A DNA stretch of 64,000 nt, taken from the NCBI GenBank assembly GCA_001643675.2, contig LSRY02000066.1:124001-188000 (forward strand). The letters run 5' to 3'. The notes under the pieces are model-generated. The model saw only the letters and a list, made by a program, of their open reading frames with translations, was not told the DNA's origin and made no database searches. Shown piece after piece: positions 29,925 through 58,662 of the stretch (its first letter is position 1; each line of letters begins with the position of its first letter). A program made the translations under genes and the position numbers. This DNA is from Monocercomonoides exilis PA203 (taxonomy: Eukaryota; Protista; Preaxostyla).

Positions 29925-32900
29925 ATGATGATGCTTGGTCGATGCCATTTGATTTCATTTGCTATTGCTGTGCTGCTTATGCGTGAAAAGGATGCAGAAA
30001 TTGTTTCAAAAGAAAATGAGGATTTATTATTAAATGAGGAGTTGAAAACAGATTCATTAAAAGAAAAAGACAGATACATTGATAGAAAATACAATTGCAA
30101 GTCTGATATCACGAATTATCAGAAACAGAGAGGAAAAGATGATGGTGGTAACAAAAATCAAGAAATTGTTGAAAAGGCAAACCTAAAGAATGGAATCAAC
30201 GCAATGATTGACTATTTTGTACGCGAAGGGGTGATTGAACGCAGTATTTTGAATTCACATTTTGTGGTGATTAATTCGACATTAGAGGAATGCAATGTGC
30301 TATTTGTGCAGAGAACATGGAATGGGATGATTGAGATGAGTGGAAATTCAGTTCTAAAAATGAAATCGGATTTGATCGATTTTGACTCGCAATCTGAAGA
30401 ATCAGCATTTTTAGCAAGAAGCGGAGAAATCTATTTTGAAAATATAAGTGCTTTGCCAACTGGCCTTTCTCGACCAATCCAAGCATTTGTGGACAATGCA
30501 CAAGATGGAGATGAAAGCACTCTTAAAGTGTCTTTTGTAAAGAGCACATTGAGGCAGATAAGCATTGCTTCTTCTTCATCGTGCTTAGTTCAGGGCTTGG
30601 CGGGGAACGTCAACATTCATGAATGCTGTTTCATGAATGTGTCTCAATGTGTGAAACAAAAAAGAAAATCTTCACTTTCCCACAGCCAGATGAAATGGGT
30701 GAAAAGTGAAGTTGACAACAGTGAATTCGTTGGATGCAACAATCCGCAATATGGAACAGTGATTGTTACCACAGAAGAAACATTGACAATGAAGAATTCG
30801 TCATTTGAGCATTGCACAATAACACACACACCAGTGAACGGATCAAGAAACTCTTATTCGTCTGGCGATGTTGTTGCTTCGTCTATCGTTTTTTCTGATA
30901 TGACAAGCAAAATCGAACCATGTTTGGCTATATATGCAGAGAAAACAGCAACATTAGTAATTGACAAATGTGTATTTAGAAATATCAGTTCGAATATTGA
31001 TGAAAATATATATGGCGGAGCAGTGCACCATGAAGGAAATGGTTATCACAAGTCCAGAGGATGTAATTACACAAATTGCTCATCAATATATGCAAGTGGT
31101 GCTCTTGATGTCGAGGCGAAAGGAGATAAATTCATTCAAAATTGTAAAATTATTGGATGCAGTAGCATGCATTATTCAGGCATTTTTCTATTTTTTGATA
31201 CGAACAATTCAATATTTAGCAACAATCTAATTCGAGAATGCATTGCAAGTGGTTATGGTGCTGGCGCTGGTGTATATGTTGGAAATAACACAGCAATATT
31301 ATCTGAATGCAGATTTTCTTCATGCGTATCCAGCAATTATTGTGGAACTTTGTCGTTTGTCTGGGGAGTGGAAGGTTTTACAAAAGGATTTGTTTGGATC
31401 CGTTTCTGCACGTTTGATAACAACACGGTTGATATGGAGGATGGGGGATGCGATATTGGATCGTGGAATGATACTTTTTATAACAACAAAGTTGTGAAGG
31501 ATTCTTTTATATCATCGTTTTCATTGAGCACACAATCAATTCGGGTGATGATTGGACGAGTCAATCACACCGAATGGCTTCCAAATCCACCTATTGAAAA
31601 TCTTTTTGTGCATGTTTCATCGGTGCTTGGAGATGACAGTCGGAGTGGTTGTGGATGTGAAGTGATTCCTTGCCAGTCGATTGGAAAAGGAGTGCTTCAG
31701 AGAAAGGATGGTCAGTGGCTGATTGTGAGTGAGGGGGCATATTCACATGATTGTCTTCCTGTGCTTAACATGAATGTGAACATGAATGGAGGGAATGTGG
31801 AAATATCAACGCTAACCTCTTGTGGAACAGGCAATGGAAAGGCGCTGTTTGAAGTGACAACAGGAACTTTGGCGATTGAACATTTCGCAATTGTCCACTC
31901 GAGTTCAGAGTCAGACCCTAGCTCGTCAGTTACTGCGATGAGTGGAAATGGAAAAATGGAGCTGAGCGATTGCGAGGTGTGCTCGAAAGAGGAGGATTCC
32001 GTCCCATTTACAAAATCGATGATTGTTGTGGAACATGGTTTGGCAACTTTCCGCTTTGTCAGATTCAGTAATTTCAGGAGCACAAAGCAACTGATATCAT
32101 TTTCATCACCATCAGTGATATCTGTTGAATCAGTCAAATTTCATTCGATTACTCGGACAATTGGGGATGGTGCAGTGCTTGAGGTGAGTGTGAAGGGCGG
32201 AGAGGAGCTGTCGCTGAACAACATTTCATTTGACAAATGCAAGAGCTACGGAGGAAATGGGGGAGGTATTTGGGTGGAATTGGAGAGAGGAGGATTGTTT
32301 GGGATGGGGAATACAAGTGATGTGAGCAAGGGAGTGAGGATGAGGGAGTGTGAGACAATGGTGAATGAGAGTACAGGGAAAGGTGGATGTGGAGGAGGGG
32401 TTTATATTAATGTTGGGGATGGGGTAGATTCGTTTGTGTTGAAGAGGGTCCAGTTCGTTGGATGCATAGCAGCAAAAGGGAAAAGCTTGTTTGTGAATGC
32501 AGAGCAGCTGAGTGGGCTGATCAACAGAAATTCGATTGGGTTTGATCTTGTGCAATCTGATTTGGAAGAGCTGAGAGGGCGAGAGAGCTCGATAATGGTT
32601 GAGGGAGCGAGTGTTCCGCTTGTGGTGTTTCTGTGGACAAACACAAATAGTTTTGGGCATGTTGGGGGAGAAGATGGAGTGGATTTCAGCAGGTGTGGAT
32701 TTGAGGAGGTACCATGCTCATCGATAAAACAGGCGATAAACGTGTGGTTTCCTGAGAAGAATCGATTCATCAAGATCCACTCACTGTTTGTTTTGAGTGA
32801 GGAGCTGAGTGTGAACAGCTACGAATGGAACATCACAGGAAGCGAACCAGAAGCACAAGTGGAAGTGTGGAGCAGTGGAAGTGTGGAGCAGTGGAAGTGG

Positions 32901-35900
32901 GGAGCAGGAAGGAGTTGTGGAGACGAGTGTGAAAGCATGGATTGGGGATTTGAGTGTGCGGGTGGGGGATGGAATAGGGGTGTATCAGGCAGTGGTGGTG
33001 TGTCGAAGTGGGGTTCTGAGTATGAGCAAGTGTGGGATGAAGGGAAGCGTTGGTGTGGTTGGGCTGAGCTTTGTGAAAGTGGTTGGAGGGAATGTGGAAA
33101 TATCAGAGATGGGGATATCAGCAATTGAATTTGGGGAAGCATCTACGCTGGTTGCTGGAGGAGGGAGTAGAAGCAAGAGCGAGAGCAAGAGCAGCGATGA
33201 TGGAAGTTGCTGTTTGAAAGTGAATGACTCGGTGTTTGAGCAGATAAGGATGAGAGACTGGAGTGTTGTGAGGTGTGGAGATGGGGCTGATGTGAATATA
33301 AAGAACTGCACATTTACGAGGGTGAGCCGCACAAGCGGAAGCGGAGGGAGTGTTTGTGTAGAGGATGGTCAGAGCACAAGAGAGACAGCTGTTGTTGTTT
33401 CAGAAAGTGAATTTGAGGAGAGTGCTGTTGAGGAGGATGGAGCAGGAGGAGGAGGAATCTGGGGGAGGCTTACTGCAACAAGAAAGGTGGAAGTTGGATC
33501 TTGCACATTGAAGGGGTGCAGAGCACCGAGTGGAGAGAAAAGGGGGTATGGAGGAGGAATGTATCTGGACGTTGTGGAAGCGAGTGCTCCCTTTGTGGTT
33601 GCAGCACCACAGTTCATAGGAGAGAATCCGAATACTGCGAAGGAAGGAAATGATTTGTTTGTTGTGTCACCAAATCTGATGGTGAGCATGAGAAACAGCA
33701 CGCTTCCGTTTGCAGCAGAAATGGAAGGGATGGATTTGGATTCGATTCGAGGATTCAATGGATCTGACAGGAGCGAAAGTATCCCACTGATCTTGTATTT
33801 CAAAGAGGTGGGATCGAAGATATATGTATCAGGGGAGAGAGGAAAGGATATTGCAGTGTGCGGGTTTGATGAGTATCCGTGCAAGAGTGCTGATTATTGT
33901 CTGGTGAGGCTGGAATCAAAGGAAGAGAAACAAGTGGTTGTGAAAGGGGGTGTAACAATGGGAAGGGAAATTGATCTGAGCGATGTGGATATTCGGGGAG
34001 AAGGTGAAAGGAGAGCAGAGATGGATGTGATTGGTGCTGTGGAAAGGGTGAGCGGGAAGATGATGAGATCTCAGAGAGTGACAAGAATTTGCAAGCTGGA
34101 TATTAAGTTGCCTGCTCAACTTGGGAATGAGATGAGTGCTGCCTTCCATTCATGGACTGCGGGAGGAGAGTTGAGGATTGAGAACTGCTTGATGGGAATG
34201 AAAAGTGGAGAGACGGAAAAGATTGGGTATTATTTGATCTGTGCTGAAGGGAAAGTGCTGAGCTTGAATTGGGTGAGGATTGAAGGTATGAAATCATCTC
34301 AGTCGTTATTCAGCGTGAGCTTAATTGCCTTGGATGCAGATGAAGAGAGAGGAAATAGTCGGTCTATTGATATCAGAAACAGCTCATTTACGAGTGTGAC
34401 AATACCTGCAAATGATTGTGCAGCACTTTTTGGATCGAGGATAGGAGTTGGCTTTGAGATGGAAGAATGCAACATTTCTGATGTTGTGTCTGAGGGGAGT
34501 GGTGAAGGAGGGGCAATGAAGTTTGTTGTCGAGGGATCAGGATGGGTTGAAATGATGAGGTGCATGATTGATGGATGCAAGGCAGAGACAACAGGTTTTG
34601 GGAAAGGAGGAGGGATATATGTTGAGTGTGGAAGAGGATTTCCAGTTTCTTTTTCAGAGATAGTGCTTGAGAGTTGTGATGCTTATTGTGGGAAAAACAT
34701 TTTTGTTAAGGGATACAAGTTGTGGAGTGATATTGAGAAATCAAAGTTGAATGTGGAGATACCATTTGAAAAGGAGATGTTGAATGAGTTTGTTGGATAT
34801 GATGAGGAAGAATCAGTGTATATTCCATTGGCAGCGTTTGTGGCTACGTTGGAAGGGAAGGGATATGTGGGAGGAGAAAGTGGGATTGATTATCCGATGT
34901 GCGGGTATGAGTGGTTTGCATGCAAGACAATTGGATATATGGGGGAATGGCGGTTCAGAGGCGAGAAGGCGAATGTATTACTGCAGAATACGTTCAGTTT
35001 CAGAGACCGGATTGTGCTTGATGGACAAAGTTTTGAGATTTGTGCTCAAAATGAGGGAGGCGAAGTGAGAGTTGAAGGAGGAGGCGGTGGAGAAGGAAGT
35101 GGGCTGATTGAAATTCAGGGCAATGTGCAGCTGGAAAAGATGACTCTCGTGCTTCCATCGGTGTTTGAGCCTTTATCGAGGGAGTGCTTGTTTTTGAGCA
35201 AGTCAGCATCTCTGACGCTTGAAGAGATGGAGATAAAGATGGAGGCTTCTGGACAGGGATGCAGATATTGGATGGTGAAGAGTATGGGAGGGAGTGTGAA
35301 AGTAAGAGGGATGGTGATGAGAAGGACTGAGTTTACTGGGGCAGGAGTGATCGAGATGAGTGGAGCAGAGGTTCTTGGAAATGTGAATGGGCTTGTGATG
35401 GAAGAAATAAAGATGAAAGGTGTGGGAGGGCTGGTGGTGATAAAAGGTGGTGCGAAAGTGGAAGTGATGAACTCTTCTGTGAAGGAGGCTACGTTTGAAA
35501 ACCATTGTGGAATGAGCTTGGAAAGAGGAAGTGGATTGGTGATGACAGGGTGCAACATGAGTAGAGTCAAGAGAGAGGGTGGAGATGGAGGAGGGGTGGC
35601 TGGAGTGGTTGGAAGCTGGCAAAGAGTGGAGATGAAGGGATGTGAACTCAAGACGATGGGATGCTCTTCATCTGGATCTGGGGGAGGAAGCGTGAAGATG
35701 GTTGTGGAAAAAGGAGGAGAGTTTGTGTTTGACTCAAACGAGGTGCGTGAGAGCAAGGTTCCAGCACTTGAAGGAAATGGAGGAGGGGTGCATCTGACAC
35801 TGGAAGGCAAGGATCTGAAATATTCGATGAAGGGATTGATGCTTGAAGAGAACGATGCACAATATGGGAAGGATGTGTATCTTGTTTGTCCATCACCGAG

Positions 35901-38900
35901 AGAAATGGTTGATCCTCTGTTGTGGAGCGGGAGCGCATCAAAGGAAGAAGAGGAGAGACGAAAGTGGGTAGTGGATCCAGGGGATGAACGGATGAACATG
36001 ACTCTGTTGAGATTTCTGTTTCCGCTTGATGAGGATATTATTTATGTGGATGAAGAATTGGGAAGAGAGGTTGATGGATGCGGATCGAGTGTGAACCCCT
36101 GCAACGAACTGGGATATGGATATGGGAAGCTGGGAGATGCGAAAACAATCCTGCACGTCCAGAACAAGGCGAAACTTGTGAGCTTGATTGAGAGAGCAGA
36201 TGCAAAGTTGACTATTCGAGGGGAAGAGTTGAAATCTGAGCTTATTGTTGAAGAAGCAGGGCGTGTGGTGCTTAAATCTGGAACACAGTCAACGTGGTTG
36301 ACTTTCCAGAACATTATGTTCACATTGCATGGAAGTGGAGGAAAATACAATGATGTGATTGTGGGAAATGTGGGGAGAGTGTGGATCGTGGGATGTGAAT
36401 TTGGGAGCAAGAATGGAACTCAAGCTGAGTGTTCGAGGTGGATTGTTTGTGGGGGAGGGAGCAGTGTGCAGATAGAGAACTCGACTGTGGGAGCGATTGA
36501 GTTTGTTGGAAGAGGAGGACTGTGCAAGATAACATCGGGAAGTGTGGTGATGGTGGGATGTTTCGTAGAAGATGTGAAGGGTGAAGAGAACAGTATGATT
36601 TTGTGCGAAGAAGGAGCAAGCGTGTGCGTGAATAGAACAACGATAACAAGATGTGAAATGGGGAGCGGAGGGATGATAGAGGCAAGAAACGCATCTACTG
36701 TGGAAATTTTGGAAGGAACAAAATTTGAAGGATGCTCATCTGATTCAGGAGATGGAGCATGCCTTCACTGTGAGGTTGTGGGGAGCAGGAGAGTTGCAAT
36801 AAAGAATGCAGGATTTAAAAGGTGCTTTGTGGATGAAAGATGTGGAAGAGGAGGAGGAATTTATCTGAGGTTGAAGGAAGATGTAGAGAGTGACATAGAA
36901 CTGTCTGGTCTCGAATTTGGAGAGAACATGGCATTTGCAGGAAGAGATGCGTTTGTGGAGTGCGAAGAGCTGAACAAGTCAATGAAAAAGGAGAGGCTGC
37001 AGATTGAGATGTTTGATGCAGATGGGAGGCAGATTGCGTTTATGGAAGGAACCGAGAAGGGAGCATTTGACGGGCATGTGGTGGATCTTGGAATGTTTTT
37101 ATTTGAGTATTGCTCAGAAACAGTTGCCGTGTGTAGTCAGACAGGCATTGATATTGTAGGGTGTGGAAGAGCAGAGATGCCATGCAACACTTTCTGGTCT
37201 GGGTTTCAGCATGTGAATTGGTCAGCTTCAGGGATGAAGCAGATGGTACTTGAGGGGACAATGAGTGTCCGCGACACGTTTTGTGTGTCTTTGCTGAGAA
37301 TCGTTTCGTCAAGCGATGAAAAAAACTGTGTTATCCACTTTGAGGCAGATCTGGAGACAGCCAAGGGAGATGAAGTATTTTTGGCATCAGCAGATGTTTC
37401 TTTCAGCGGCATTTCATTTGTTATTCCCTCGGCATTTGCACCAGAGAGATTCTGCTTGGTTTTACTGGATCCAAATGCAGAATCCTTTGCAGAGTTTAGT
37501 TTCACAAACTGTTCATTCCAGTGTGTTGAATCCGTGAATGCAAATTTAGCAATTGGGTATTGCTTGATTGAAGCAAAAGGAGGGATGGTTGGGATAGAGA
37601 ACTGCACATTTGGAAACTTTTTATTTAGCACACCTCCACTCGTATTTTTGTCAACCGCAACCATCGATGGATGCACATTTGAGTCGATGGAAACACCAAA
37701 TAGCAAACGTGGAGGAGCAATAAAAGTGAATTTTGGTTCAAATGATCAGCTCATCGTAAAGAAGACGAAATTGATAGGATGTGGATGTTCAATAGAGAAA
37801 GGAAAGGGAGGAGGAATGTATGTGGACTGCGCGAAATCAACAGCTGATGAGCCATTTGTGCTTGAAAACATGATATTTGAGAAGAACAAGGCGTTTGCAG
37901 GAGAAAACGTTTTTGTTGTGAGTTCGTGTTTGAACAGTTCAGTAACAGAGCATTCGTTTCTGTTTAGCTATGAGCAAATGAGCACCAATGGAAAGGAGTT
38001 TATGGGGAGTGATGATCAGTTTGTCGATACAGATCTGCTGCGTTTCTTGGTGTTGTACAAGAGCAGTGCGATCCATGTGTCATCGAGTGGAGCAGATGTG
38101 AAGCGCTGTGGAAGTGAGGCTGAACCATGCCAGTCATTCTGGAGCGGGATGAGTAATATTGAGAGAAATGAAAGTGGGATGGAGATTGTTATTTGTGGAG
38201 AAACAACAGTTGCTGACGAATATGATGTTTTAATGCTCAGGATTGGATCATATGGAAGTGATGCAGGAGAACAATTGAAAGGGAAAATGATAATTGTCGG
38301 AAAACAGAGTGGCAGGACAGGAGCGTATTTTGTGAACAGAGAAAGATTGGAAGTGGAATTGATTCACTTTGTGATAAGAGCGCAATTTGACAGTTTGTCA
38401 AACTATGTGATTGTGAACGAGGAAGGGAGATTAGAAGTAAAGAAGTGTGGAGTTGAGATGAGGGATGTGAACGGTGAGGCGGCTGGATGCAGTTTTGCGG
38501 AGATGAGGAAGGGATAATTGAATGTGGAAAGTTTGGAAATGGAAGCATCGGTGATCGAAAAGAGTGTATTTGTGATTTTTGAAGAGTGCCAATGTAAGTG
38601 CGAAGGGTTGAGCCTTCTTGCAACAGAGATAAGGAGAGGGTGTCTGTTTGAGATTGCTGATGGGTTGGGCAGAGCAAACGAAAGAGGCAAACTGGAATTG
38701 AATGAATCTTCGTTGAGCATGATATCGAGAGGAGACAATGGAGGAAGCGTTATCCGTGTTGGTGCAACAGGAGGAGGAGCAGGAGAGGAGAATGTAAATG
38801 GGGTGAATGTGGAAGTGAGTGGATGCGAATTTGTTGATTGCAAGGCAGAAGCAAGCATGGGTGGGGGAGTGATGTTTGTGTGGCTGAGGGATGGAGGAGC

Positions 38901-41900
38901 GCTGAGAGTGAGAGACACAACAATGATGAGGTGCAGCTGTTCGAATCAGGGGAGAGGAGGAGGGGTGTATATTGGAACAGATTTAGGAGGGAAGCTGGAC
39001 TTTGTGTTTGAGAGGATGGTGTTGAAGGGGAACACGGCTGGGGTGGGGAATGATATATATGTGCGGTGTGTGAACATCAGTCAGCAGATCAATGAGACTC
39101 AGTTCAGATTCTCTCTGAGAGAGAGCGATTACTCGAGAAGGAATGCGATCTTCGGATGCGACACGACAGACCATGTGCTGGACACGGATCTGATGGATTT
39201 CATCACGATATATGAGAGCGACATGATTGTGGTGTCTTTGTTGGAGGAAAAAAAAGGGAAGGATGCTCGACAGTGTGGAACAGCAAAATTGCCGTGTGTG
39301 AGTGTGGGATATGGAGTGCAGCATCTGACGAATGAGTTGATGAGTGTGATGCTTGTTGATGAGGTATCAGTGATAGAGGGAGAAGTGAATCTGAAGAACA
39401 TGACTCTTGAATCGCGATCAAAGAGCACAGCAAGAGTGGAGGTGGTGAATGGGATGGAGCAGACAAGGGAGTGTGTGATTGAGGTTACAGAGCATGTGGT
39501 TCTGTCATTGGTGAGATTTGAATATGGAGAAGAGATCTCGAATGGGTACTCTGCGTTTATATCTGTTGTGAATGACAGTGTGAGTGTGGAAAATTGTGTC
39601 TTTGGAGTGTTGGAAGCTTCGGCAATATTGTGTGTTGTTCCATTCTGCTTAATCCATATAACAACAGGAGAAGGATTCATCGGTGGATGCAGTATTTGTG
39701 GGCTGTCATTTTCTGAAGCAATATTTGAAATTGAGCACAGTTCATTCACAATTTCATCTTGCGATTTCACAGAAATGGAATGCAGGAATTATGTTGTGAG
39801 GCAATGCAAGGGGAATCTGGCTGTGAGGAACAGCTCGATATCGATAAAGGATGAAGAAGGAACTTGTGAGGCGGGAGTGAGTTGTTCATCAGTTTCGTCA
39901 GTTCAGATGGAGTCATGCAAGATTAGACGGAGATCCGTGGAGAATGAGAAGGGGAGTGTTGTGACTCTGGTGAAGTGTGGAAATGTGAAGATTGATTCGT
40001 GTTCATTTCTGGAAAGCACAACTGCAAGTGAAAAGGAGAATGGTTTCAAGGAAGATGCAGACATCTGCATGTGGAATGGCTCCATTGTCAGTGTTGATAA
40101 TTGTGAGGTGTTGATGAAGGATACAACAATTTCCAATTCATCAGAAGGTGGAATAACAATGAGTGGAGGAATTGCGAATATTGAGAAAGGAGAGTTTTTG
40201 AATAACAATCCATCAATTGAAGGATATACATCATTGAGAAGAAACATCATATGTTCGGATTGTGGAACATTGAATATTTTGAGTTTGAAAGGAGGAGATG
40301 GAGTTTTGCCAAACACATCACTCTGGATGTTGGATGATGGGTGCAGTTTTGAAGGGATTGCTTCAGAGAGATCGTCACCTTTGTTTATTCCTGTATTGGA
40401 GAGTGTGTCAAGTGAGGAAGATGAAGGAGAGATGAAGCTGACATTCACTGGGTCTCTGCTTCTGCCGTGCAACTTGTCATTTAAGATAACATCGAAAGTG
40501 GGAGATGTGGATGTGATTGACAGATACACGTTTTGTTCAGATGAGCATGGAAATGAGAGCAGTGCAGTTGGAAGGATTCCATCAAATGTGGTGAAATCAG
40601 CTGCAGAGGAAGCAGAGGTGTCAGCGTGCATCTTGCTTGGAAAGGCAGATTCTCCTTCGTCAACGCAATCTTTCATTCTTAAGAACAGAAGTGAGCCCAA
40701 GGCAAATAGAGATGAAAGGATTGTTGAAGGAAAAAACGAAGGAAAATCATGGGCTTTTATAATTGCAATTATATTTGTTGTTTTGTTTTTGATTGCACTT
40801 ATTGTTTCCATTGCTGTGACAATTAGATGGAAGAAGGCAAAGGATGAGAACAAAGACCTGAGAGAGATAGTGAATGATAACATCAGAAAGGATCCGAAGG
40901 CATTTGAGATGGTGACGATGGAAATGTCACCTGAGGCACAATGGAGAAGAGCTGAGAGAGAGGCAGAGAAGAAGAATGAGGAGAGGATGAAGAAGAGGAT
41001 GTATGATAAGACACTGGAACATTCAGAGTCATCAGAACATCTTCTATCTGAGAGTGGATCGACTGAATACATCCTGGGAAGAGACTCAGACAAGATCCCT
41101 CAATGGGTTCTGGAGAAGGTTGAAGAAGATGATATTTCAAGGAAGCGTACTCCTTCACCATCCATCTCATCCACCTCAACCACTTCAACGACTGATTCAG
41201 ATTCAACATTTGTTCGTGGAGAGGATCCGTGTCCAACCACCTCGTCGATGTCGAATCTTGTCGATGCAATTGCCTGTTCATCGCCTCACGAAAAATTGAT
41301 TGTGGACTTGAGGGATTCTTTGTTCATGTTGTTGCATGGGATGAATAAGACAAAGGAAATGGCGATTGGTACTCTGCAAGAGAGGGAGCAGACAGCATCC
41401 CAAATCCTGTTCTGGGTGGCTAATCTCGCACTCCATTCATTTGATGAGATGGAAAACCCGCTTCAATCGCTGGCCAATCTGAGTCCACTCATTGTCCTAT
41501 TCTCTGAACATATGGTTATTTGTGTTGCAATTCTCTCCGACTGCTCTTCTTCAGGTTCAGACACTTCTTCCATCTCTTCATCAACTGTTGTTACATCCTC
41601 AAGTGATGATGATAACCGAGATTCTCTGCCATCATCAGCGTTTGAAGATGAAGAGGATAACAGGAATGAGTGTTTGAGGTGGAAGGCACCAGAGCTGTTG
41701 AATGGCACAAAGAATAATGCGACGAAGAAAACGGTTGTGTTCTCGATTGGGATGATGTTGTGGGAGTGTCTGACACTCAAAGTTCCGTTTGGGGAGTATG
41801 AGGCGGAGGTGGCAGGACAGAAGATAGTGAATGGGGAAAGACCGTGTGGAGGGGAGAGTGAGGCAAGTGGGATGCATGAGATGGTGAAGGGATGCTGGAG

Positions 41901-42060
41901 GGCAGAACGTGGGGAAAGGGTGACATTGATGTGGGTGAAGCGGGAATTGTTTGGGCATTTCCCAGGAGAAGCAGCGGTGATGACGATGACGGATGCAGTG
42001 CTATATGAGGAGAGCAAAGATAACATCTCAAGCTGCGAGAGTCTTGTGGAATATTTTTAA
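29925..42060 (+). pseudogene. Giant intronless receptor-like gene (~4,040 codons when repaired): signal peptide, 8 beta-helix/Pmp-like modules, single TM, TKL-like pseudokinase C-lobe; disrupted by one frameshift and one stop
   Basis: Three listed ORFs (29925-33128, 32875-38517, 38518-42060) are one continuous gene. A 16-nt duplication at 32859-32890 shifts the frame by +1, and TAA 38515-38517 is in frame with the last ORF. Repeated GGG(I/V)Y, FxxNxA and CGxxxxPCxS motifs; TM WAFIIAIIFVVLFLIALIVSIAVTIRWKK; C-terminal RWKAPELL and VFSIGMMLWECLTLKVPF. Confidence 0.85.
32859..32906 (+). repeat. 16-nt tandem repeat GTGGAAGTGTGGAGCA x2 perfect plus 1 copy with one mismatch
   Basis: Units at 32859-32874, 32875-32890 and 32891-32906 (GTGGAAGTGGGGAGCA). 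Confidence 0.95.
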
Positions 42061-46823: not shown

Positions 46824-49800
46824 ATGTCCGGGAAAGGAAGGCTATCCGCTGAATTATTTCAGTTAATCGGAGAATTGAATCGAGGTTCTCGTCCGATACG
46901 CCTTGAAGATGTAACTTCTCCTTATGTCCGTATTCAAAGAACGCTGAAAGAAATATTGGCGTATCTTAGGAGTGACACGAAAGATAGAGAAGTTTGGCAA
47001 GCGTTTGCAAATAGTAAAGCAATATCTATCAACCTCTTGCCTCTGTTTAAAGAATCAATGGAACTTTTTGAACAAGAAAAAAGGAAGGGAGAATTTTCAA
47101 ATGAAAAAAAACTTAATGCATTAAAATCTGTTCAACTAACAATTCTGAAAATTCTTGTATTTGCTACCATGCCCATCCACAGTGACCTGACATTGCAGAC
47201 TCACTCAACAAAGAATACTGATGAAGCTGCTTTAAAAGATGCATATGAACTTCCACTAAAATACGGGCAAACATTTTTTAAATTTGAAGAAGCTCTTTTT
47301 ACAGATTCATTATTTTTTATGACTCTTGTCCATTTGTATATGTCAATCATTCCTTCTGAAGAAGAAATTACAGAAATCTTTGCAGCAACGAAGCAAAATA
47401 GCAATGATGAAGTTCATATTATTCAAATTTCGTATGTTTCTAGAAAATATTTAACTTTGTAATCATTTAAATTTTGTTTTTTTATTGTTGCTCATTTTTC
47501 AAGTCAAGCTGATGCGCAAACGATGGAACTTATTCTGACATTAATTCGAAATATCATGTTTGTAAGTGGGCCTCGTAACGAAGGAATGATAAAAGTTATG
47601 GCTGCGAATGGGGTTTTTGACATGCTTGCATTCACAGCAGAAATATTTCCAATTTGTCCCGCACTGAATCCTTTAACAAAGTTTGTTTCGAAAGAGCCAT
47701 CAATGGTTGCTCAGCTTATCATTGAATGTTTCGCACTGCTGTTCCGCGATGTGCAGCCTGACGCGCTTTGGAGATCCAAAGTGAAAGCTCCAATTCAATT
47801 CAAGAAAACGGCAGAAATCGACCAAAAAATGTCATCTCAACAAATGCCTGCATCTTTATCTGCTCCTTCTTCTCCTCATATTTCTGCATCGTCCTCTTCT
47901 TCATTACCTCTTACGCCACCAAATTCTCCAATGCCCCCAGCTTTACCAAAGGAAGTCACACAAATCCAGCCCATTCGAACAGAAGCTGACAATATTTTGA
48001 GGCAATATCGGCTGAAACATGAGAATACTGCACCACTTCTGAGACATCATCGCATAGATGAGTCGTTTCCAAAGGGGAAAGGTGCAGAAGTTGTTGCTGC
48101 TCTGTACCAGTCATCGTCCCAAGCACGCAATCAAGTTTCAGCTGCTTCCGCCTCTGCATCTGCCTCTGCTTCCGCTTCCGCTTCTTCTTCTTCTTCGTTG
48201 GTTTCTGAAAGTTCATCGACAATGATACAATCAATTTTGAATAAGAAGGTTAATGGTGGAGAATCATTTCCTTCAACAGCAATTGCTCCACTCATTTCGC
48301 CTAATCAGCCCAGTTGCTATTTTCCTTCTTCTTCCAATCGCCTTTTATCATCTTCTGCATCTTCTTCATCCTCTCCACTTTTCACATCCACTCCCTCATA
48401 CATTTCACGAAGATATCCATCTGGTCTTCCATTCCTTTCTGAACCTCCACTTCAGCTATTCCGCTTCGAAGATCCCTTTTCCCATCCAGTCGCTCCTCAG
48501 CGCAATTTCAGTGTTAAATCAATTAAAGTTGATTCTCGCCCTCTTCCTGGCAAAAGTAGCTTGCTCAAGTTTGACACAACCACACTCTCTCTTCTGTTTG
48601 ATGTGGCACAGCTTTTGGTATCACGATCTACAGAGCTGGTGTCTGTGACTGTGCAAGAGATGATTCAGGGCTTTGGAAACGAGAAGCTGGAGATTGATGC
48701 TGTCTATTGGATGCGTGTGTTTGCAATGGCGCTGGGTACAGAGCGCATTCTGTATGACGATGCAATGCGGAAGTGGTGGACAGGATGGATGGAGATATCA
48801 TTTCTGATGGACGAGCAGGAGAAGAACGAGCAAAAGAAGAACAGAGAAAGCAGCAATGACTCGGCAGTCAAGCCCAATTCATTTGAATCAGCTCTGCTTT
48901 TCTCCTCTTCTCTTCCCAGTAAGTCACATACGTCTATTGTGCTTCCTCGAGTACCTGCTGGAACGCCTTTTCTTCCTGCTCTTTCCAGCAGCGTGACTCC
49001 TCTGCCAAATCTTCCGCCTTCACTTGCTCTGCGGCTGGTTGCTGCTGCTGATGCAGTTGCTTCTCAACTCAAAGGAATGGAGATGAGCGGTCCATATGGC
49101 TATCTACAGGCATTTTCAGAGAAAGAGAACAAAAATGAAAAAGAAATGCAGAGTTCATCTGAAATGGACAAAGAAAGTGAAGATGCGTTCAACATGCAAG
49201 AGAAGATAACACAGGGCATGATTGAAGGAGAAATCCCCAGTGATTTACATGAAAACGAAAAGCAGAATGCTGAGATGTATGCCTCTTCTTTGTCCTCTTC
49301 GGCAAGTGCATCTGCTTCAGGAGCTCATTGCTTATCAGACCCAATGGATTCGATCCAGTCAAGCCTTGTAATGGGCAATCCATCACCGTTTCCTTCTTTC
49401 CCGTCTGATTCGTCACAGCAATTAGAGCTAGATAATTTTATTGATTCGTCTTCGTCGCAAACGAAAATTCTTCCAATGTCATCTCTAAATAGCCAATCTT
49501 CTGATTTCTCTTCAACAGAGTTACTTTCTTTGCGTCCTCTTCCATTCTTCCTCCCTCTTTCTCCACCTCGTTACAACTCTTTCCTCTTCATTCCTCTTCT
49601 CCAACCTTCTGTTTTCCGCTTTCTTTTCACCCGTATCACAGACTGGATATCAACACCAGAGAAATACGTTGAACTGTCTTCGGGTGTGAGGTTACTGGTT
49701 GAGTTGTGTTGGTGTTTGCATCTGATTCTGCTGATGGAGAACACAGCTCAGATCAAAGCAGACATGATTGTGGAGGAGATGAAGAAGGAGGACGATAACA

Positions 49801-52800
49801 TGCTCCGTCAAAAGATGAAGGAAGAAAGCAAAGAAAGCGAAAACGAAGACTCAGAAACAGAAAAAGAAGAGACAAAAGATCCCTTCCGCTCCAATCTTTC
49901 TCTCACTCAACTGACAACACCGCCAGTTCTGCCGCTCCTTCTTCCTGTGCGACGTTTGGTGGAGAAGCTGCTCGCCGAAAATCAGCTGCTGGACATCTGC
50001 CTTCTGCTGCTGAGGAAGTTCCAGCTGAGATCGTGGGGATACGATGTGCTGACTGACATTGTGCAGTTGTGCTCGCTCACTCTGTCGCTGCACAGATGGA
50101 GCGACATGCGCGATGAAGGAGAAGATCTGATGGAAGACGACGAGCCTGAGCTGAGGGTGAATGAAGACGGAGAGCCAGAATGGTGGGAAGAGATGGAAGA
50201 GTATGCAGAATGGGGCAATGAAGAGGAAGAGATTGAGGATATTTTTGATGGAGGAGATGTGGATCAGCAGGAGGGGCTGCATAAGCTGTTGATGATGGCA
50301 AAGGACAAAGAAGGGAAAGATGAAGATGGAAAGATGAAAGGAGAAAGCAACGACACAGTTGAAGAACTTAATGATGATGTGAAAGAAGTTATTGTTGTGA
50401 ATGAGAAAGAGAACAAGAAAAGCATAACGAAAAATGGTTTGGGAATGAAAATGGAAGAGATAATGATGAAAAAGAAGGAAGAAGAGGAAAGAAAGAAAAG
50501 AAAAGAAGAAGAAAGAAGAAGGAGATTTGAGGAGGAAGAAGACGAAGACGATCTATTTGACGAAGAAGAAGAGGAGGAGGAGGCAGAAGAGGAAGAGAAA
50601 GATGAAGAGGAAGAAAAAGAAGAAAAAGAAGAGAAAGAAGAGAAAGGGGAAGAAGAGAAAGAAGATAAAGACAAAGAAAATCAGGAAAAAGATATTGAAA
50701 ATCACATTGACAGCAGTAACATAGATGACAAAAAAGAGGAAACGGAAGACAAAAAGAAAGATGAAAATGATATCCATTGGCTGGAAGAAGAAGAAAAGAC
50801 GACTGAAACAAGAGAAGAAGTAAGAAGAAAAGAACAAGAAGAAGCGCCAGAACCATTGAGAATGGAATTTGAAGTATCTTCCACGCCTTTCACAACAGTC
50901 TCAGAATCAAATGATACTACTGCTTCTGCATCTGCATCTGCATCGTCTTCTATTTCAACTTCAGATTCTGCATCATCCTCTGCTTCAGCTTCAGCTTCAG
51001 CTTCAGTATCATCATCTGCATTGTCTGAAGCATCCAATGTAAATGCTTCAAATGATGTAACAAGCGAGGGAATAGAAGCAAATGAACCTGATTTGGAGGA
51101 GATATTAAAGTCTGAAGATGAAGAAAACGCTGCTCAAAAAGAAATCTCTGAAAAATCGTCTGTTGTTAACAATGCAAATGCTGTTGAACTTGAAGATAAT
51201 GAAACAATTGAAGTCTCAGCAGACAAGCTGAAAGAGATCGAAGAAGAGCGACAACTTCGACTGGAGTTGGAGGAAGAGAATGAACGTCTTGGAAACAAGT
51301 TAGATGTGTTTGGAATGGAAGCTATTGGAAGCAATGCAGGTGGGCCAAGAGGAGCAAAGAACAGGAGGAAGAAGAAAATGATGAAGGGAAAGAAATGGAG
51401 GAGAGGAAAAGGAGGCAAAAGAATGAACAAGGGAGCCTTCGGAACAGCCGAAGAGGAAGAAGAGGAAGACGAGGAAGACGAAAGCGGATTGAGTCATCCA
51501 GATTACTCCACACGCCATTCTGATTTCGTTCATGCTGCACGCAGGTTCTCCATTCAGTCATTTGTGAAGCTGTTTGTGTTTGTCCTGTCGAATGAGGATG
51601 AGAACACGCCAGCTGTGAATGACGCAGTTGCTGCTCTTTTGTGTGTCGTTGCTGATCCACAAGAGCAGGGGCTGTCACTGTTTGCGTCTGACTTGTCTGT
51701 TTCGTGCTGCGAGGCGAGAAACAGATTGGAAGGATGGAGAGAAGGGAAGACTGCACTAAGTGTGGTGTCGCGTGGGATGAAGAAATGGATGAGAGAAAAG
51801 AGAGAAAAGAAAGAGAGGGAAGAGAAGAAAGAACAGCAAAAAGGAGATAACATTGAATTCAATTTGATAGCTGATCCAGAATTCAAAACAGAGAATAACA
51901 GAACGACTGAGCTTCTGCTTGCATCGCGAATGTCCCACCGAACTTCCCCGTTTTTCGGTATTTTATATCAAATTCAATATCTCTACTCATTTGCATCGGC
52001 ACTTAATAAGCAGAAGCAAAGAGAAGATCTGCATTGCAGAAACATCATGGAAATTATCTCAAAAATGAAGGAAGAAGAAAAGAATGCAAAGCTCAAAGAA
52101 CAGAAAATGCTGCTTTCTCCAAAATCTTCCTCAAAATCTTCCTCAAAATCAATTGTGAATCGATATGTAGCAATGAAAAAATCAAGACAAATAAGTTCTG
52201 CTTCAGCATCAGCTTCTGCATCGAGCTCTGCTTCTGCTTCTGTTTCTGCTTCATCTGCAGCTTCAGGAAAGCCCTCTTCTCAATCAAACATGTCTCTTCT
52301 GCTCTCTACTCCTTCTTCGCTTCTTTCGCGCATGCCTCCTTTGTACACACCATCGATTGCTCATCTGTCGCGATGTGTTGTCTCCTGCTTTGCAAAAGAA
52401 AGTGCTGATAATCCGAAGCTGTATTTAGAATCTCTTTGGAAGATCAACCCAATGGATGAGCGTGCAGCATTGATTAGAGAACATCACGGTGTGCTGCAAG
52501 TGGAGAAGAAGGAGAGGAAGAAGCGGGCAGGAGAGATGGGTGGATACTACAGTGAGGACGAGAGCGATGGATGGGGCGGTGGAGGGAGAAGGAGAGGAAG
52601 GAGAGCAAAGATCAATTCATTTGGTTTAGATGATGACGATCTGCTGTCAAATGATGGGCTGATTCGAAGAAGAAGAATGCTTGCTGGCAGAGGTGGAGAT
52701 GGAAATGCAAATGAAAGCAGCAGCGAGAAGGAAGAAGAAGACTTGGAATGGATTAAATCACTTGGGAAGGAGAAATCCGGAAAGAAGAAGAAGAGAGAGA

Positions 52801-54743
52801 GAAGGAAAAGAAAGGCAAGGATTGAAGACGAGGACGATGAAGAAGAGTCAGGCAGTGAAGAAGAGTGGGGAAGCGATATGGACGACGAGATCCTTAAGAA
52901 AATCGGAAGTGGCAGAGAATATGAAAAGAGAGAGAAAAAGCAAAGAAAGATTGAAGATGACATGGTTGATCTTGACGAACTTATCAAAAAGAATAAGAGA
53001 AGAAGGAGAAGAGAAGAAAAAGAAGAAGGAAAAGGAGATGAAAGCTCCGAAGAGGAAAGTGATTTAGATGTTCTATTTGACAAGTCATTGCTTGTATGGG
53101 ATGATAACAAGACGAGAAAAGTGCAGGAGATTATTGGGTATGTTATGGAGATTGTGGATTATGCGGAAGCAGCTGCAACAGCCGAAGAGAAAGTGGATGA
53201 AATGATGAAGACTGAACAAGAAGAGGAAGGAAAAATGGAATCAGAAGATAAAGAGAAAGAAGGAGAAGAAAAGGAAGAGTCGACTTTAAGCAAGGAAGAC
53301 AGAATTCGACAGATGATTGAAGACAAAGAAAAGCAAATAAGCGTTGAGAATCCGTTTGCGAAAGAGCAGATTCCAACAAAGCAGCTAATTTTGCGCACAC
53401 TCAGCCGAAAGCTGTCTGATGTGTTTACACAGAAAGTTTTGAAAGGCAAAGTTGAAGCAATATTCGGTGAAACTTTCTTTGAAAACTTGGATCAAGTTCG
53501 AAAGTTGTATGGAAAAGCGAAGCCAAAGGCAAAAGAAAGAAAGGCAAAGAAGAACGAAACTGGAGAAACAAAGAGAAGAAAGAAGAAGGAACAGAAAGGA
53601 AGTGAAGAGAGTGAGTTTGGTGTTGGCAGCGATGCAGACAGCATATTTGGAGATGAATCCGAGAGTGAAAGAGAAAAGAAAGCAGGGTCAGACGAAGAAA
53701 GCGAGAAAGAACGTGTTTCAAAAGCCAGAAAAGCAGCTAAGTTGGAAGTGAAGAAGAAGAACATGCTGAAGCAATGGCCAAAACGCAAGCTGCAGGAATT
53801 GATTGATCAGTACAACGATATGAAGACCCTCTTTACGTCTTCTTCTCTTATTGAATCTCAGCCATCTTCACTTGACTCTTCTCAGACTTCTGGTTCAATT
53901 GAAAGCCCTCTGTTTTCATCAGAGTCAGCTGCTCTGCCAATATACGATCTGATATTCAGTGCGCTTGAAGAGAAAGGAAAGGAAAGAGAAGGAGAAAGAA
54001 AAGGAGACGAGCCGCCGCTTAGGAAAGTGGATGTGAGGGCGCAGCTTGTGCTTGCTGGTCTGCCTTTGCTTGGAGAAGGGAAAGGGTATTTGGAGACTGG
54101 ATTCAATGAAGGGGAGAGAGAAGAGATTGAGATGCTGGAGAAGATGATGGAGAAGAAGAGAGAGAGAATGAAGGGAAAGAAAGGAAAGAAAGAAGCAGAA
54201 GAAGAAAAGGAAGATGAAGAAGAAGCAGAAAATGATGAATCAGAAGAGAACAAACAATCAAAATCAAAAGCACGAAAAGAAGGAGGAGAAGGAAAGGAAG
54301 AAGAAGAAAAGGAAGAAAATGAAGATTCTGAGAAAAAGAAGCATCATAAACATCATCACAAAAAAGACAAACACAAAAAAGATAAAAAAGACAAGAAGAA
54401 GAAGCACAATCATAGCTCTGTCAATACAAACAAAGGTAAATCCTCGTTAATGACGAAATTGGAGCGTTTAAGACGATGGAGCGGAGATACAAGTGAAGAC
54501 AATGCAAACATTGAGCTGAATGAAGAAGGAAAGATGAAAGCAGATGAAGAAGGAGAAGATGAAGAAGCATCGATTGAGCTGAAGTCACTAAGTCAATTGA
54601 AAAGAGTGAAGAGGCAATCATATGGTGATGATGCAGGAGATGATGAAGGAGATGGAACAATTTCAAGTCAGCCTTTGCCTTCTTCTCAACCATCAGAATC
54701 AAGTGAATATAGAATCCCATCTATCGACTCCCTTTATGAATAA
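46824..54743 (+). CDS. TIMELESS: Timeless/Tof1/Swi1 replication-fork protection protein (~2,615 aa); one intron
   Basis: N-terminal TIMELESS domain motifs LKEILAYLRSDTKDREVWQAFANSKAISINLLPLF, ILKILVFATMPI, FEEALF and MELILTLIRNIMFV. Later conserved blocks RRFSIQSFVKLFVFVL..NDAV and GILYQIQYL. Intron 47432-47503 joins ORFs 46824 and 47523 in frame. Confidence 0.82.
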
Positions 54744-54986: not shown

Positions 54987-56528
54987 TCACAAAGTTGCAT
55001 TCATCTTTGTTGCTGATTTGACAGAGAGCTGAAGCGGGGCAAATCCATCTTTTGCATAAAGAGAGAACTCAACATAAAACCTACGCCAAAGGAGTTCAGA
55101 TCGAATCTCTTCGCGTTTGTCAGTGTCAAATGAAGAGAGCTGATCTGCTGTATATCCAATGAGCGTGGCAGCAACTTCGCTGAATAGCGTAGTGGATAGA
55201 GAGCCTGTATGATCCACAAAACAGCAAGTGACTTTCAAAGCAAGCGAAGGAGATGCACCACAAGAAGAACACGGCGGAAGAGAAGATAAATCAGGAAGCG
55301 ATGTCAACGAATCAGAAGATGATAAAGTTGCTGAAATTGATGAATGATGTATTGTTTTTTTGCAACTAGCACATCGAAGAAAAAACGGACGAGTCAGATC
55401 GATATCTTCAAGACAAACCATCACGGCTCCTTGTTGAGATCCAGATGTTGGGGTGGCCGAATGACCAACAAGTGGTGCAAGATATTCCTGAATTCCTTGA
55501 ATGGTAGTTAATTGCGCTGAAGCAGCAGAAGACTTTGATGGATAAGAAGATGAAGAAGATGCATACGAAGAACTTTGTGATGAAAAAGGTAATGATCGTG
55601 CAGCAATTGAATCTTGTCCTTTCATCTGTTCGTTTCCCATAAACATTTCTTTTGAAAACCCGCTTGGATTCAATGTTATAATGGAATTCATGCTCGTGTT
55701 GCATCGGACTTTTCCTGCAAAAACGCTAACGCCAACATTTGTTACATGCACAATTGATTCTCCCGCGTGCAATCCTCTCATCACTGTGCCTTTTTCTCCC
55801 CAACAAGATAAAACTATTTGCATCCCTTTTTCTTGTAATGTTACATCTTGCTTCTCAACGCCCCTTCCTCTTTTTGTTTTAATCATTGTAGGCTTGGATA
55901 CTGCTTCCACAAGTCCGACTATTGAAACATCTCTTTTTCCCTTAAATCAAAAATGTCAAAATTCAAGCAATGAAAGAAACAAAAATCATACCACATGTGC
56001 AAACAGATCTTCAAACGGTACAGTTTGATAAACTTCATTTATGCCAGGAGTCACATTGATTCCTGTTTTGAAAAATAATTAATACTTGAATAGTTTTTCC
56101 AAAAAAAGGTTATTGAGCAAACTCTTGAGCAAAAAAAGTCCAACTTTTCCCCCATCGGGATAGGTTGTTTGGTATGTATCATCTAGTACAAGAATATACA
56201 TTTTCTCCCCTGAAGCCTCAGTCTCCCATTTGATATAGGATGGATGAACATCTATTGAATCATAAGCTTCAAAAGAGTATTCATTTTCCTCTGCAAATGA
56301 TCCAAGACATAAAACTTGACACCTATGCGAATTTGATTCCGAATCAGCAAGAACAAATCGCAGTTCAGAACGATCTGAAAAGAAAGAAAAATAAATAGTT
56401 CAATTCTAATATATAATTAACGAACGAGTTGTGGTGTTCAGTTCCAATTTAGGTTTTTGCACAATAGTTCCAGTTATTGATGGACTTGAACAATCCCTAA
56501 TATTGCAGATATTTCTCACCGAAAACAT
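54987..56528 (-). CDS. Triple OB-fold ssDNA-binding protein with C4 zinc ribbon, MEIOB-like (alternatively an RPA1 paralog); spliced
   Basis: OB2 motifs DVSIVGLVEAVSKPTMIKTKRGR..KQDVTL..IVLSCWGE and SIITLNPS. OB3 has RCASCKK..CSSC and FVDHTGSL..VAATLIGYTADQL..LLWRRFYV. ATG at 56528 is preceded by an in-frame TGA; there is no RPA70N domain. Confidence 0.65.
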
Positions 56529-56628
56529 GATTCATTCATCTTGCCTGATTTTCATTGAGTAGTTATGGTTGAACCATTTTTCTGTAAATAATAAAGGTCA
56601 AGATCTAACAAGCTTTGAAAGTTGTTCA
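56529..56628. promoter_or_regulatory. Putative bidirectional promoter (OB-fold gene / mucolipin)
   Basis: Only 100 nt separate the divergent start codons at 56528 (-) and 56629 (+). Confidence 0.45.
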
Positions 56629-58662
56629 ATGTCAGAAGGAAAAAGTCATTGGCTGAATTTTCGAGAGCAATCATTGGAAGATAAATTAAAATTAGGACCG
56701 ATTGAAAAGTGGAGAAAATACAGAATCTTTCCAACTAAACTTGTTCTTCAATTTCTCACATCAATATTTATTCTTGTTCAATTCTCACTTCTTAATTTTT
56801 CAAAAGACAATGAAATAACTTCATCAAAGGAAATGATGTTAGCCTTTTTTATGCCAGCTGAATTTGATCATTATGAACGGAAATATCAAACATATCACTT
56901 TTTTCGCTCTTCTGAGTTTCTGGATCATTTAAAAGACGTTACAACTCGATTTTTCAATTGGAAACAAACAACTGTTGGAGATTATTCAGTAAACATTGAT
57001 GATTCACCACCACTTTCCAAATTTTCATTTTATGAAGGATGGCCAAAAGATGGGCAGCCCCCGAAAATATCTAGGATTAGCGAAAAAACATTCACTCTCA
57101 CTGAAGATAACCCGTTAGGACCATTTAATGAAGATGAAAATAAGCAAAAACTTTCAATTAGAATGATGAAGCAATACAAAATAACTTTTAAATTTTCAAC
57201 GCATAGACATAACTGGGCTGAAGGGAAAAACAGTAGCCATTTGAAACATAACTTTGATAAATGGGAAGTTGAGCTAACTTATGATTTTACAAACCGAGGT
57301 GTTATTTCGTTGGGATATGATCTTACAAGAAAAGTTGAGTCAATCACTGTTGGAGACTATATTAGAGTAGCAATAAATATAGCCTTATTGATTTTATCGA
57401 TCATTCAACTTGTTCTCACTTGGAAGTCTCTCACAGAGTCGTATTTCATTTTGTCTGAGGTTCGAAAAATCTACGAAGATCTTCTGAAACGAGGCGAATT
57501 CCATCTGCCTTGGTCAGCCATTCCCAGCAGACAAAAGAGGATGTTTTTCAACACTTCAAACGTTTTGACGTTCATTTCATCGCTTTCGTGTCTGATTGGA
57601 AGCGTCATCGAGATCTTGACGCTGGTGGGCGTGATGGGCCAGTCGCGGCTGGGTGACTTTCTGAGAGGAATAACAGCGCTGTTAGTGTTCACGAACTTCC
57701 TCCGCTTCTTCCTCTTCTCCAAAAACTATTCGATGTCTGTTAAAGTCACCGGAGCGTCTCTGCCAGTGATCTGGCGAATGACCGTGGGTGCGTTTCCGTT
57801 TTTCTTTGGGTGCATGCTGATGGCGTGCTCGTTGTACAGCGACCATCACGAATGGTTTGACGGCTTTGGGCAGACAACACTGACGTTGTGGGGAGTAATG
57901 AATGGCGATGTCATTCTGGATCTGTGGAGCGGTATATTTTCTGTTTCTCCGCTGTTTGGGCTGGTTTTTGAGATCGGCTTTGTGTTTTTCTTCATCTACA
58001 TCATTGTCAATCTCTATTACTCAATCATTGAGGAAGCATATTTTCAGACAAAGCGGCAACTTTATTCTGATTGGGAATGGAACGAAGCAGCTGGAGTGAC
58101 TGATGAAGAGTGGGAAAGATTGATTGGTGTGCTTTGGACTCGGCAAAAGGAAGAGCAAAGAGAAAGAAAGAGAAGGGAAAGAATAGAAAGGAAGAAGCGC
58201 AGAATTGAAAGAAGAGAAAGAGTACTGAAAATGAAGGAGGAAGAAAACGAAAGAAAAAAGCAAACGGAAGAAGATGATCAAAATAAAAGAGAAGGGCAAA
58301 AAGAGGGAAATGAAGAAAAAGATCAGCAGAAATGCTTTGATGGGAGCGCAGATGAGCAGATAGACACATCCGCTTTGATTCCTGTGCAACCATCAATTAA
58401 TTCTGCAGCGACGCTGATGAATCTGCCATCATCGCTTCCTTATTCTTCATCTGCTTCATTGACACATAATGATTCGTCATTTAATGTGCTTATTGGAAGA
58501 AAGCACAGCAGAGACAGCCGAGCTGATATTTCAGAGGGCTTTGAAGACAAAAATGGAAGAGAAGAAAAAGAAAAGGAGAAAGATAGCAATGGCTACATTG
58601 CAGCATCTGTTATGTCGATCAATAGCGATGAAATGGGCTCTTTAAGATCAGAAGACGGCTGA
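56629..58662 (+). CDS. MCOLN: Mucolipin / TRPML lysosomal cation channel, single exon
   Basis: N-terminal GPIEKWRKYRIFPTKLVLQ (TRPML PxxKxxxxxxxPxKLxLQ), large S1-S2 luminal loop, 6 TM segments, pore TLWGVMNGDVILD, and S6 FFFIYIIVNLYYSIIEEAY. First in-frame ATG is at 56629. Confidence 0.88.
   Translation: MSEGKSHWLNFREQSLEDKLKLGPIEKWRKYRIFPTKLVLQFLTSIFILVQFSLLNFSKDNEITSSKEMMLAFFMPAEFDHYERKYQTYHFFRSSEFLDHLKDVTTRFFNWKQTTVGDYSVNIDDSPPLSKFSFYEGWPKDGQPPKISRISEKTFTLTEDNPLGPFNEDENKQKLSIRMMKQYKITFKFSTHRHNWAEGKNSSHLKHNFDKWEVELTYDFTNRGVISLGYDLTRKVESITVGDYIRVAINIALLILSIIQLVLTWKSLTESYFILSEVRKIYEDLLKRGEFHLPWSAIPSRQKRMFFNTSNVLTFISSLSCLIGSVIEILTLVGVMGQSRLGDFLRGITALLVFTNFLRFFLFSKNYSMSVKVTGASLPVIWRMTVGAFPFFFGCMLMACSLYSDHHEWFDGFGQTTLTLWGVMNGDVILDLWSGIFSVSPLFGLVFEIGFVFFFIYIIVNLYYSIIEEAYFQTKRQLYSDWEWNEAAGVTDEEWERLIGVLWTRQKEEQRERKRRERIERKKRRIERRERVLKMKEEENERKKQTEEDDQNKREGQKEGNEEKDQQKCFDGSADEQIDTSALIPVQPSINSAATLMNLPSSLPYSSSASLTHNDSSFNVLIGRKHSRDSRADISEGFEDKNGREEKEKEKDSNGYIAASVMSINSDEMGSLRSEDG

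Follow-up and report, generated by a model that had tools for sequence, protein, structure and literature searches.

A probable young pseudogene of Monocercomonoides exilis from a large family of predicted beta-helix surface proteins with a non-catalytic, kinase-derived tail

Monocercomonoides exilis is a gut protist without mitochondria and a model for eukaryotes that lack them. We analysed 64,000 nucleotides (nt) of its genome (strain PA203, contig LSRY02000066.1, positions 124,001 to 188,000; the window, in whose numbering positions are given below) and followed up an earlier note that had read 29925–42060 as the gene of a giant surface receptor with a beta-helix ectodomain and a dead kinase lobe. 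Several described systems resemble such a protein in part. Receptor pseudokinases such as HER3, PTK7, ROR and RYK (PMC13259870) are likewise single-pass proteins with a catalytically lacking, kinase-derived cytoplasmic domain that is thought to act as a scaffold, but they keep the whole two-lobed fold, whereas in the M. exilis tail only the part from beta5/alphaD to alphaI is recognisable, with no N-lobe, and the M. exilis family carries an array of beta-helix modules outside and runs to hundreds of copies. The transmembrane kinases (TMKs) of Entamoeba histolytica (PMC2880585), likened here by description, also form an expanded, single-pass, kinase-tailed family in an anaerobic gut protist, with many truncated copies; they differ in having CXXC-rich, non-beta-helical ectodomains, whole kinase domains of which many are active, and ~90 rather than ~900 members.

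On the extracellular side, the chlamydial Pmp, DUF1565 and NosD-type surface proteins of bacteria and methanogens share with the M. exilis module a right-handed parallel beta-helix, a GG[AG][IVLM] turn and an FxxN motif, and are its nearest ESM Atlas neighbours in sequence features and shape, but in M. exilis the motif pair occurs once per module, the anchor is a transmembrane (TM) helix instead of an autotransporter barrel and the proteins belong to a eukaryote. Polysaccharide lyases and hydrolases, phage tailspikes and pneumococcal PfbA are alike in fold, yet no homology to them was found at the sequence level, no catalytic residues were identified in the module, and sharing the pectin-lyase-like fold indicates no function for it. 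Closest of all is a gene set already counted in M. exilis itself: the passages of PMC6759080 and PMC8767320 drawn on here list protein tyrosine kinases as its largest gene family (332 genes, 320 of them in the TKL group; PMC6759080) and note that these kinases overlap abundant unclassified repeats (PMC8767320). That family, which carries the Pfam domain PF07714, is the same gene set as the one described below, which is thus not unrecorded; those passages do not describe the ectodomain, the protein size or the missing catalytic motifs, and a comparative paper on Preaxostyla does not treat the family.

Three long open reading frames (ORFs) occupy the + strand of the segment, namely ORF1 (29925–33128), ORF2 (32875–38517) and ORF3 (38518–42060). 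ORF2 and ORF3 share one frame and are parted solely by a TAA at 38515–38517; ORF1 and ORF2 overlap in different frames. When the last 301 residues of ORF3 were searched against the M. exilis genome (82,301,135 bases in 101 contigs), three paralogs came up with uninterrupted frames of 4,035, 4,039 and 4,037 amino acids (aa), ~90.5% identical to the window copy in nucleotide sequence, with the same hydrophobic N-terminus and the same C-terminus and without either lesion. Because these paralogs align through both interruptions, 29925–42060 is one intronless gene of ~4,040 codons, belonging to a seven-module subfamily and bearing exactly two lesions, which bears out the joining of the three ORFs in the earlier note. 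All searches were run with the separate pieces or with the intact paralogs.

In a four-way DNA alignment with the three intact paralogs, the window copy has just one indel whose length does not divide by three, an extra 16-nt unit inserted at 32858/32859 as a third copy of GTGGAAGTGKGGAGCA, which shifts the frame. Where the paralogs carry two imperfect 16-nt units, the window has three in tandem at 32859–32906 (GTGGAAGTGTGGAGCA twice, then GTGGAAGTGGGGAGCA), the first two being identical. The second lesion, the TAA at 38515–38517, stands where all three paralogs read GAA (Glu) and is a G-to-T nonsense change. No record was found in a search for contigs encoding the window's own ORF3 product.

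The gene opens with a signal-peptide-like hydrophobic segment (MMMLGRCHLISFAIAVLLM, 29925–29981, the hydrophobic stretch being residues 7–19) that is kept in the intact paralogs, and continues into an ectodomain of 3,582 aa with 3.8% Cys, 11.2% Gly and 48 NxS/T sites; both features had been anticipated from the sequence. Self-comparison gave a repeat period of ~350–390 aa, bounded by a CGxxxxPC landmark that is present eight times. A profile built from family modules resolved seven full modules of ~350 aa and part of an eighth, and weakly matched the N-terminal region (29982–31694; residues 76–307, E value 2e-5). Modules 1 to 5 lie at 31695–32747 (profile E 2e-42), 32875–33921 (1e-50), 33910–34950 (2e-72), 34951–36141 (2e-59) and 36154–37224 (1e-43), and module 6 at 37219–38169 gave two matches (3e-22 and 4e-60). 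Module 7 (38161–39336) holds the in-frame stop, profile positions 7–119 ending at the TAA and positions 121–369 continuing straight after it, and is followed by the degenerate partial module 8 (39337–40047; E 4e-14, positions 9–245). A membrane-proximal stalk (40048–40749) completes the ectodomain. Between 32000 and 40000 the coding strand has a very strong GC skew of 0.4–0.56 and a GC content of 44–48%, compared with 30–37% in the flanks.

Pairwise identity among 74 aligned family modules is ~20%, and their consensus reads CG....PC ... GG ... C......G.GGG..L.........F......F..N.A..G.D.F ... CG....PC.S...G. An AlphaFold2 model of module 3 (stretch 33826–34974) made from the 74-module alignment consists of stacked short strands, with a mean predicted local distance difference test score (pLDDT) of 90.8 and a predicted template modelling score (pTM) of 0.90. 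The top rows of a Foldseek search with this model were all right-handed parallel beta-helix proteins, among them the pectate lyase 7bbv (probability 1.00, E 7.5e-3), and VIA-align superposed it on parallel beta-helix proteins over 250–290 residues with Z 18–21 and root-mean-square deviations (rmsd) of ~3–4 Å. The best VIA match was 5gkq (Z 21.4, rmsd 3.1 Å over 252 residues), and the matches comprised PL6 alginate lyases, BT_1002, Rhombotarget A, rhamnogalacturonan lyase, polygalacturonases, phage tailspikes, depolymerases and the adhesin PfbA. Next to a Preaxostyla cluster, the closest ones in the ESM Atlas were annotated DUF1565, Chlam_PMP, Beta_helix or NosD, and included adhesin-like proteins of methanogens. 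The model thus assigns the ectodomain module to the right-handed parallel beta-helices with a pectin-lyase-like fold, as had been predicted.

At the sequence level the modules are almost invisible. Pfam gave no match on ORF1 or ORF2; Beta_helix (PF13229) matched 4 of the 74 family modules (best E 1.8e-7) but none of the window's own, with E 0.57 on ORF3 and no hit on the modelled module 3. A profile search of all PDB sequences with the module alignment came back empty. The earlier note had likened the repeats to Pmp/pectin-lyase-like beta-helices; membership of the Pmp family failed on several counts: Chlam_PMP (PF02415) matched a single one of the 74 modules (E 0.0012), the consensus has one G.GGG..L ... 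F..N.A..G.D.F motif in place of many GGA(I/L/V) and FxxN repeats, Pfam found no Autotransporter domain, and the C-terminus is a TM helix with a cytoplasmic tail, not a barrel.

The one strong hydrophobic helix, AFIIAIIFVVLFLIALIVSIAVTI, spans ORF3 residues 745–769 (40750–40824; Kyte-Doolittle 3.5), within the interval of about 40747–40830 expected for it, and is followed by a tail of 411 aa (40825–42057), in which a long juxtamembrane helix leads through linkers rich in Ser/Thr and acidic residues to a kinase-derived domain. A tail of 380–460 aa follows the TM helix in 111 family proteins, and over 56 aligned tails the mean column identity is 67%, with 59 invariant columns from the juxtamembrane helix to the C-lobe. 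ORF3 residues 1045–1143 (41650–41946) matched positions 160–257 of the 258 in PF07714 at 34.9 bits (cut-off 23.1), and a PDB profile search with the tail retrieved TKL-type kinases (ZAK/MLT, TAK1, CTR1, TNNI3K and ILK, E ~3e-7) over the C-lobe part. As the earlier note had seen, the window's tail has RWKAPE, VFSIGMMLWE..PF and CW..ER, and GxGxxG, HRD and DFG, together with the VAIK lysine, are in none of the 56 aligned tails.

To trace the reach of the homology, a profile was assembled from nine domains of true kinases that have GxGxxG, HRD, DFG and APE, taken from among weaker matches of the large search described below. Using hhalign, the tail profile aligned with it at a probability of 99% and E 5e-18; against one neighbouring kinase alone just 38 columns aligned. 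Posterior values were moderate to high from beta5/alphaD (~tail residue 140) across alphaE and the positions of the catalytic loop and of DFG, and high between APE and alphaI. Upstream of residue 140, in a region of a long helix and then Ser/Thr- and acid-rich linkers, they were near zero and no N-lobe could be aligned. HRDLKxxN aligned with L-A-N-L-S-P-L-I and DFG with the window's S-D-C, so that Asn replaces the catalytic Asp, and Ser both the Lys of the catalytic loop and the Asp of DFG; across the family the catalytic loop has the consensus LxNLSPHI, with L-x-N opposite HRD and S-D-x opposite DFG. The placing of LANLSPLIVLFSE at the catalytic loop in the earlier note was upheld by this alignment, in which LANLSPLIVLF occupies that position. 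On these comparisons the distal ~240 residues of the tail (41233–41955, from about beta5/alphaD to alphaI) are derived from a TKL-type protein kinase, and the catalytic motifs and the nucleotide-binding N-lobe are all missing as judged from the alignments. Because the HRD and DFG places read L-A-N and S-D-C, no member of the family would be expected to be an active kinase.

The tail also defines the extent of the family. Back-translated RWKAPE patterns hit 459 + 466 genome sites, compared with none for the reversed control, which points to about 925 tails, i.e. ~900 members. Among 131 tails that were scored (all E < 1e-128), 85 (~65%) have an open frame of 2,500 aa or longer, which in 11 cases reaches at least 3,900 aa, and the remaining 46 lie in shorter frames. 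If two thirds of the ~925 copies measure 7.5 kb or more, the family amounts to at least 5% of the genome. The published count of 332 genes in PMC6759080, as far as the passages used here go, compares with ~925 tails found by us. The best 120 matches in a database search with the tail were all MONOS_ proteins of M. exilis, most of them labelled "uncharacterized protein", while a few bear the name "putative Protein tyrosine and serine/threonine kinase". With its module array, single TM helix and conserved 400–440-aa tail with RWKAPE, the window copy has every defining feature of the family, and it is the only member in the 64 kb. A literature search for proteomic data on the family found nothing.

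Two further observations were made on family genes and their kinase relatives. Convergent inverted duplicates are frequent among family genes: positions 1–3860 of contig C75 are the reverse complement of 6352–10233 (99.46% identity over 3.88 kb), and contig C1 has +/- pairs of RWKAPE sites ~4.43 kb apart at 2704/7151, 75999/80428 and 189973/194397. Two of the inverted pairs sit at contig starts, and such pairs may be palindromic amplifications or nanopore fold-back artefacts. In addition, full-length matches to true kinase domains occur in open frames of 4,100–6,900 aa at C52:244016, C23:935922, C47:332771, C28:950606 and C67:94142; any of these with a beta-helix ectodomain would be a candidate for an active ancestor of the family.

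To look for relatives beyond the reference genome, the tail was searched exhaustively with HMMER against 1.84 billion representatives, and 97 proteins scored at E up to 1e-30. The three matches below 65% identity that were examined at that level (P0177, P0184 and P0198; 39–65% identity, E < 1e-30) were M. exilis proteins. More distant matches came from other sources. P0215, a 1,792-aa protein encoded at 1391–6769 of a 6.9-kb contig (GC 22–34%) in Logan assembly SRR13490893, matches the module profile twice (E 1e-31 and 2e-17) and has a single TM helix; its tail matches PF07714 positions 150–258, has no HRD or DFG and is 29% identical to the window's. Two proteins from Joint Genome Institute (JGI) metagenomes, P0212 and P0230, have the TM helix and the tail. 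The other-source tails, 23–29% identical to the window's, keep PTTSS..LVD, IVD(L/I)RD, LSP, RWKAPE, GM, PF and GERP, and neither HRD nor DFG was found in them when aligned. Since relatives this distant keep those motifs and lack HRD and DFG, the dead half-kinase is old and maintained. The earlier note had proposed an expanded, lineage-specific family: the expansion is borne out by the RWKAPE counts, but P0215 and the metagenome proteins indicate that it is not wholly confined to M. exilis.

Comparisons among the window copy and its three intact paralogs gave ratios of nonsynonymous to synonymous divergence (dN/dS) of 0.23–0.42 in the ectodomain (dS 0.09–0.28) and 0.09–0.18 in the TM helix and tail (dS 0.4–0.85). 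In sliding windows most of the ectodomain is 92–97% identical to the paralogs in nucleotide sequence, apart from patches at 31122–31421 and 34122–34421 (80–87%), whereas 40119–41600, covering stalk, TM helix and the first half of the tail, is only 58–82% identical, the stalk patch 40419–40713 being the most variable part (58–60%); identity returns to 92–94% over the last 450 nt. This divergent block accounts for the higher dS of the tail, and the blockwise pattern suggests segmental exchange among family members. The dN/dS of the window copy against the paralogs is the same as that among intact pairs, so the lesions would be young and the copy would have remained a functional gene for almost the whole time since it split off.

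These results together make it probable that the window holds a young broken copy of a large family of beta-helix surface proteins tailed by half a kinase. From its sequence features, an intact member is a type-I membrane protein with a signal-peptide-like start, a beta-helix array, a variable stalk, a TM helix and the 411-aa tail. Several points weigh against this reading. AlphaFold modelled the tail poorly (pLDDT 51.6, pTM 0.30, helices only), and Foldseek with that poor model found kinases as its best matches at an insignificant level (E 0.14, template-modelling score ~0.1); the ectodomain could be enzymatic, because its fold neighbours include many enzymes (lyases and hydrolases); and in a multigene family of ~900 similar, 90%-identical copies the interruptions may stem from assembly or polishing. 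The kinase ancestry claimed for the tail therefore stands by sequence (PF07714 and hhalign) and found no backing in structure prediction, which also placed disorder at tail residues 63–156; a kinase-lobe fold of the remnant is not confirmed.

For intact members we can sketch how such a protein might work. Seven or eight repeated modules would form a long rigid rod projecting off the membrane, and the array, being of a surface kind that binds or cuts polysaccharides, might bind glycans on bacteria or mucus. Inside, the tail would bring together its juxtamembrane helix, runs of Ser/Thr that can be phosphorylated and a docking lobe derived from a kinase, the dead remnant serving as a docking scaffold that links binding to the uptake machinery or to active TKL kinases. 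Extending this, we tentatively raise the possibility, which we would not call likely, of an oxymonad-wide system for recognising prey or glycans, in which ~900 mosaic receptors diversified by segmental exchange would share one invariant non-catalytic docking domain.

The main rival on function, to which we give slightly less credence still, is that intact members make up a variable coat, protective or immune-evasive, instead of acting as signalling receptors, with the tail doing no more than sorting and anchoring. The very large family, an ectodomain and stalk that vary while TM helix and tail are conserved, mosaic divergence suggestive of segmental exchange and the many pseudogenes all speak for a coat. 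Such traits are common to variant surface families of other metamonads, such as the variant-specific surface proteins (VSPs) of Giardia and the BspA- and Pmp-like proteins of Trichomonas. Yet a 411-aa tail held at dN/dS ~0.1, with a kinase-derived domain kept in distant relatives, goes far beyond the needs of sorting, and the ectodomain dN/dS of 0.23–0.42 shows no overall positive selection.

As for the locus itself, a young pseudogene made by one replication-slip duplication and one nonsense mutation is the explanation we hold with fair confidence, in place of the hidden working receptor of the earlier note; the copy is broken in the assembly, and its product would be at most a secreted N-terminal fragment of ~1,070 aa. 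It is improbable, but worth weighing, that the gene is intact in the organism and that nanopore assembly or Pilon polishing introduced both the 16-nt duplication and the TAA. In the passages of PMC8767320 used here, the assembly is described as based on Oxford Nanopore Technologies (ONT) reads and polished with short reads; the similarity of the copies leaves room for error, and a dN/dS equal to that of intact copies is what an intact gene would also give. However, nanopore errors do not typically take the form of a perfect 16-nt tandem duplication or a G-to-T substitution, neither change could have been taken from any of the three nearest paralogs as donor, and about a third of the scored family copies have truncated frames, so decay is common.

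Very much less probable is a programmed ON/OFF switch by slipped-strand change at the 16-nt repeat. The frameshift does lie within a short tandem repeat that has two units in the paralogs and three in the window, but the idea is weakened because the TAA at 38515 keeps the gene off whatever the repeat number, the three intact paralogs compared here have two imperfect units each, and the extra unit is a single observed event of the kind that one replication slip produces. The least credible reading, that of active receptor kinases of the tyrosine or TKL type, has on its side a Pfam kinase match above the gathering score and the label under which the passages of PMC6759080 and PMC8767320 count these proteins, and founders on a PF07714 match limited to model positions 160–257, on 56 aligned tails with no Gly-rich loop, VAIK lysine, HRD or DFG and no alignable N-lobe, and on Asn, Ser and Ser at the catalytic Asp, catalytic-loop Lys and DFG Asp.

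A young broken copy is, for the locus itself, a modest result. For the family, the consequence would be that the biggest gene family of M. exilis, read as "tyrosine kinases", cannot consist of kinases and is instead one of giant beta-helix surface proteins with a dead half-kinase, which would change the view of the M. exilis kinome and account for a large part of the "unclassified repeats". Its members are the molecules most likely to mediate contact with the gut bacteria that the cell needs in culture. A one-lobe kinase remnant kept in distant relatives would also offer a useful natural case in which to study the role of non-catalytic kinase domains. If the recognition-system proposal is true, the family would be a protist counterpart of the large repertoires of innate-immune receptors, occupying at least 5% of the genome.

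Elsewhere in the window, a 1,442-aa ORF on the – strand (7232–11560) has a complete, normal kinase domain (Pkinase, 181.9 bits, residues 32–338) in an unrelated layout. On the + strand, an ORF of 212 aa (46824–47462) that weakly matches the TIMELESS N-terminal part lies directly upstream of a 2,406-aa ORF without Pfam matches (47523–54743); they may represent exons of a single Timeless-like gene, with a short intron or a frame change between them. The + strand also encodes a WSD/DDT-type protein (71–2230; PF15613) and a polycystin-type cation channel (56569–58662; PF08016), and the – strand a protein with a replication factor A C-terminal domain (54987–55910; PF08646, slightly below the cut-off).

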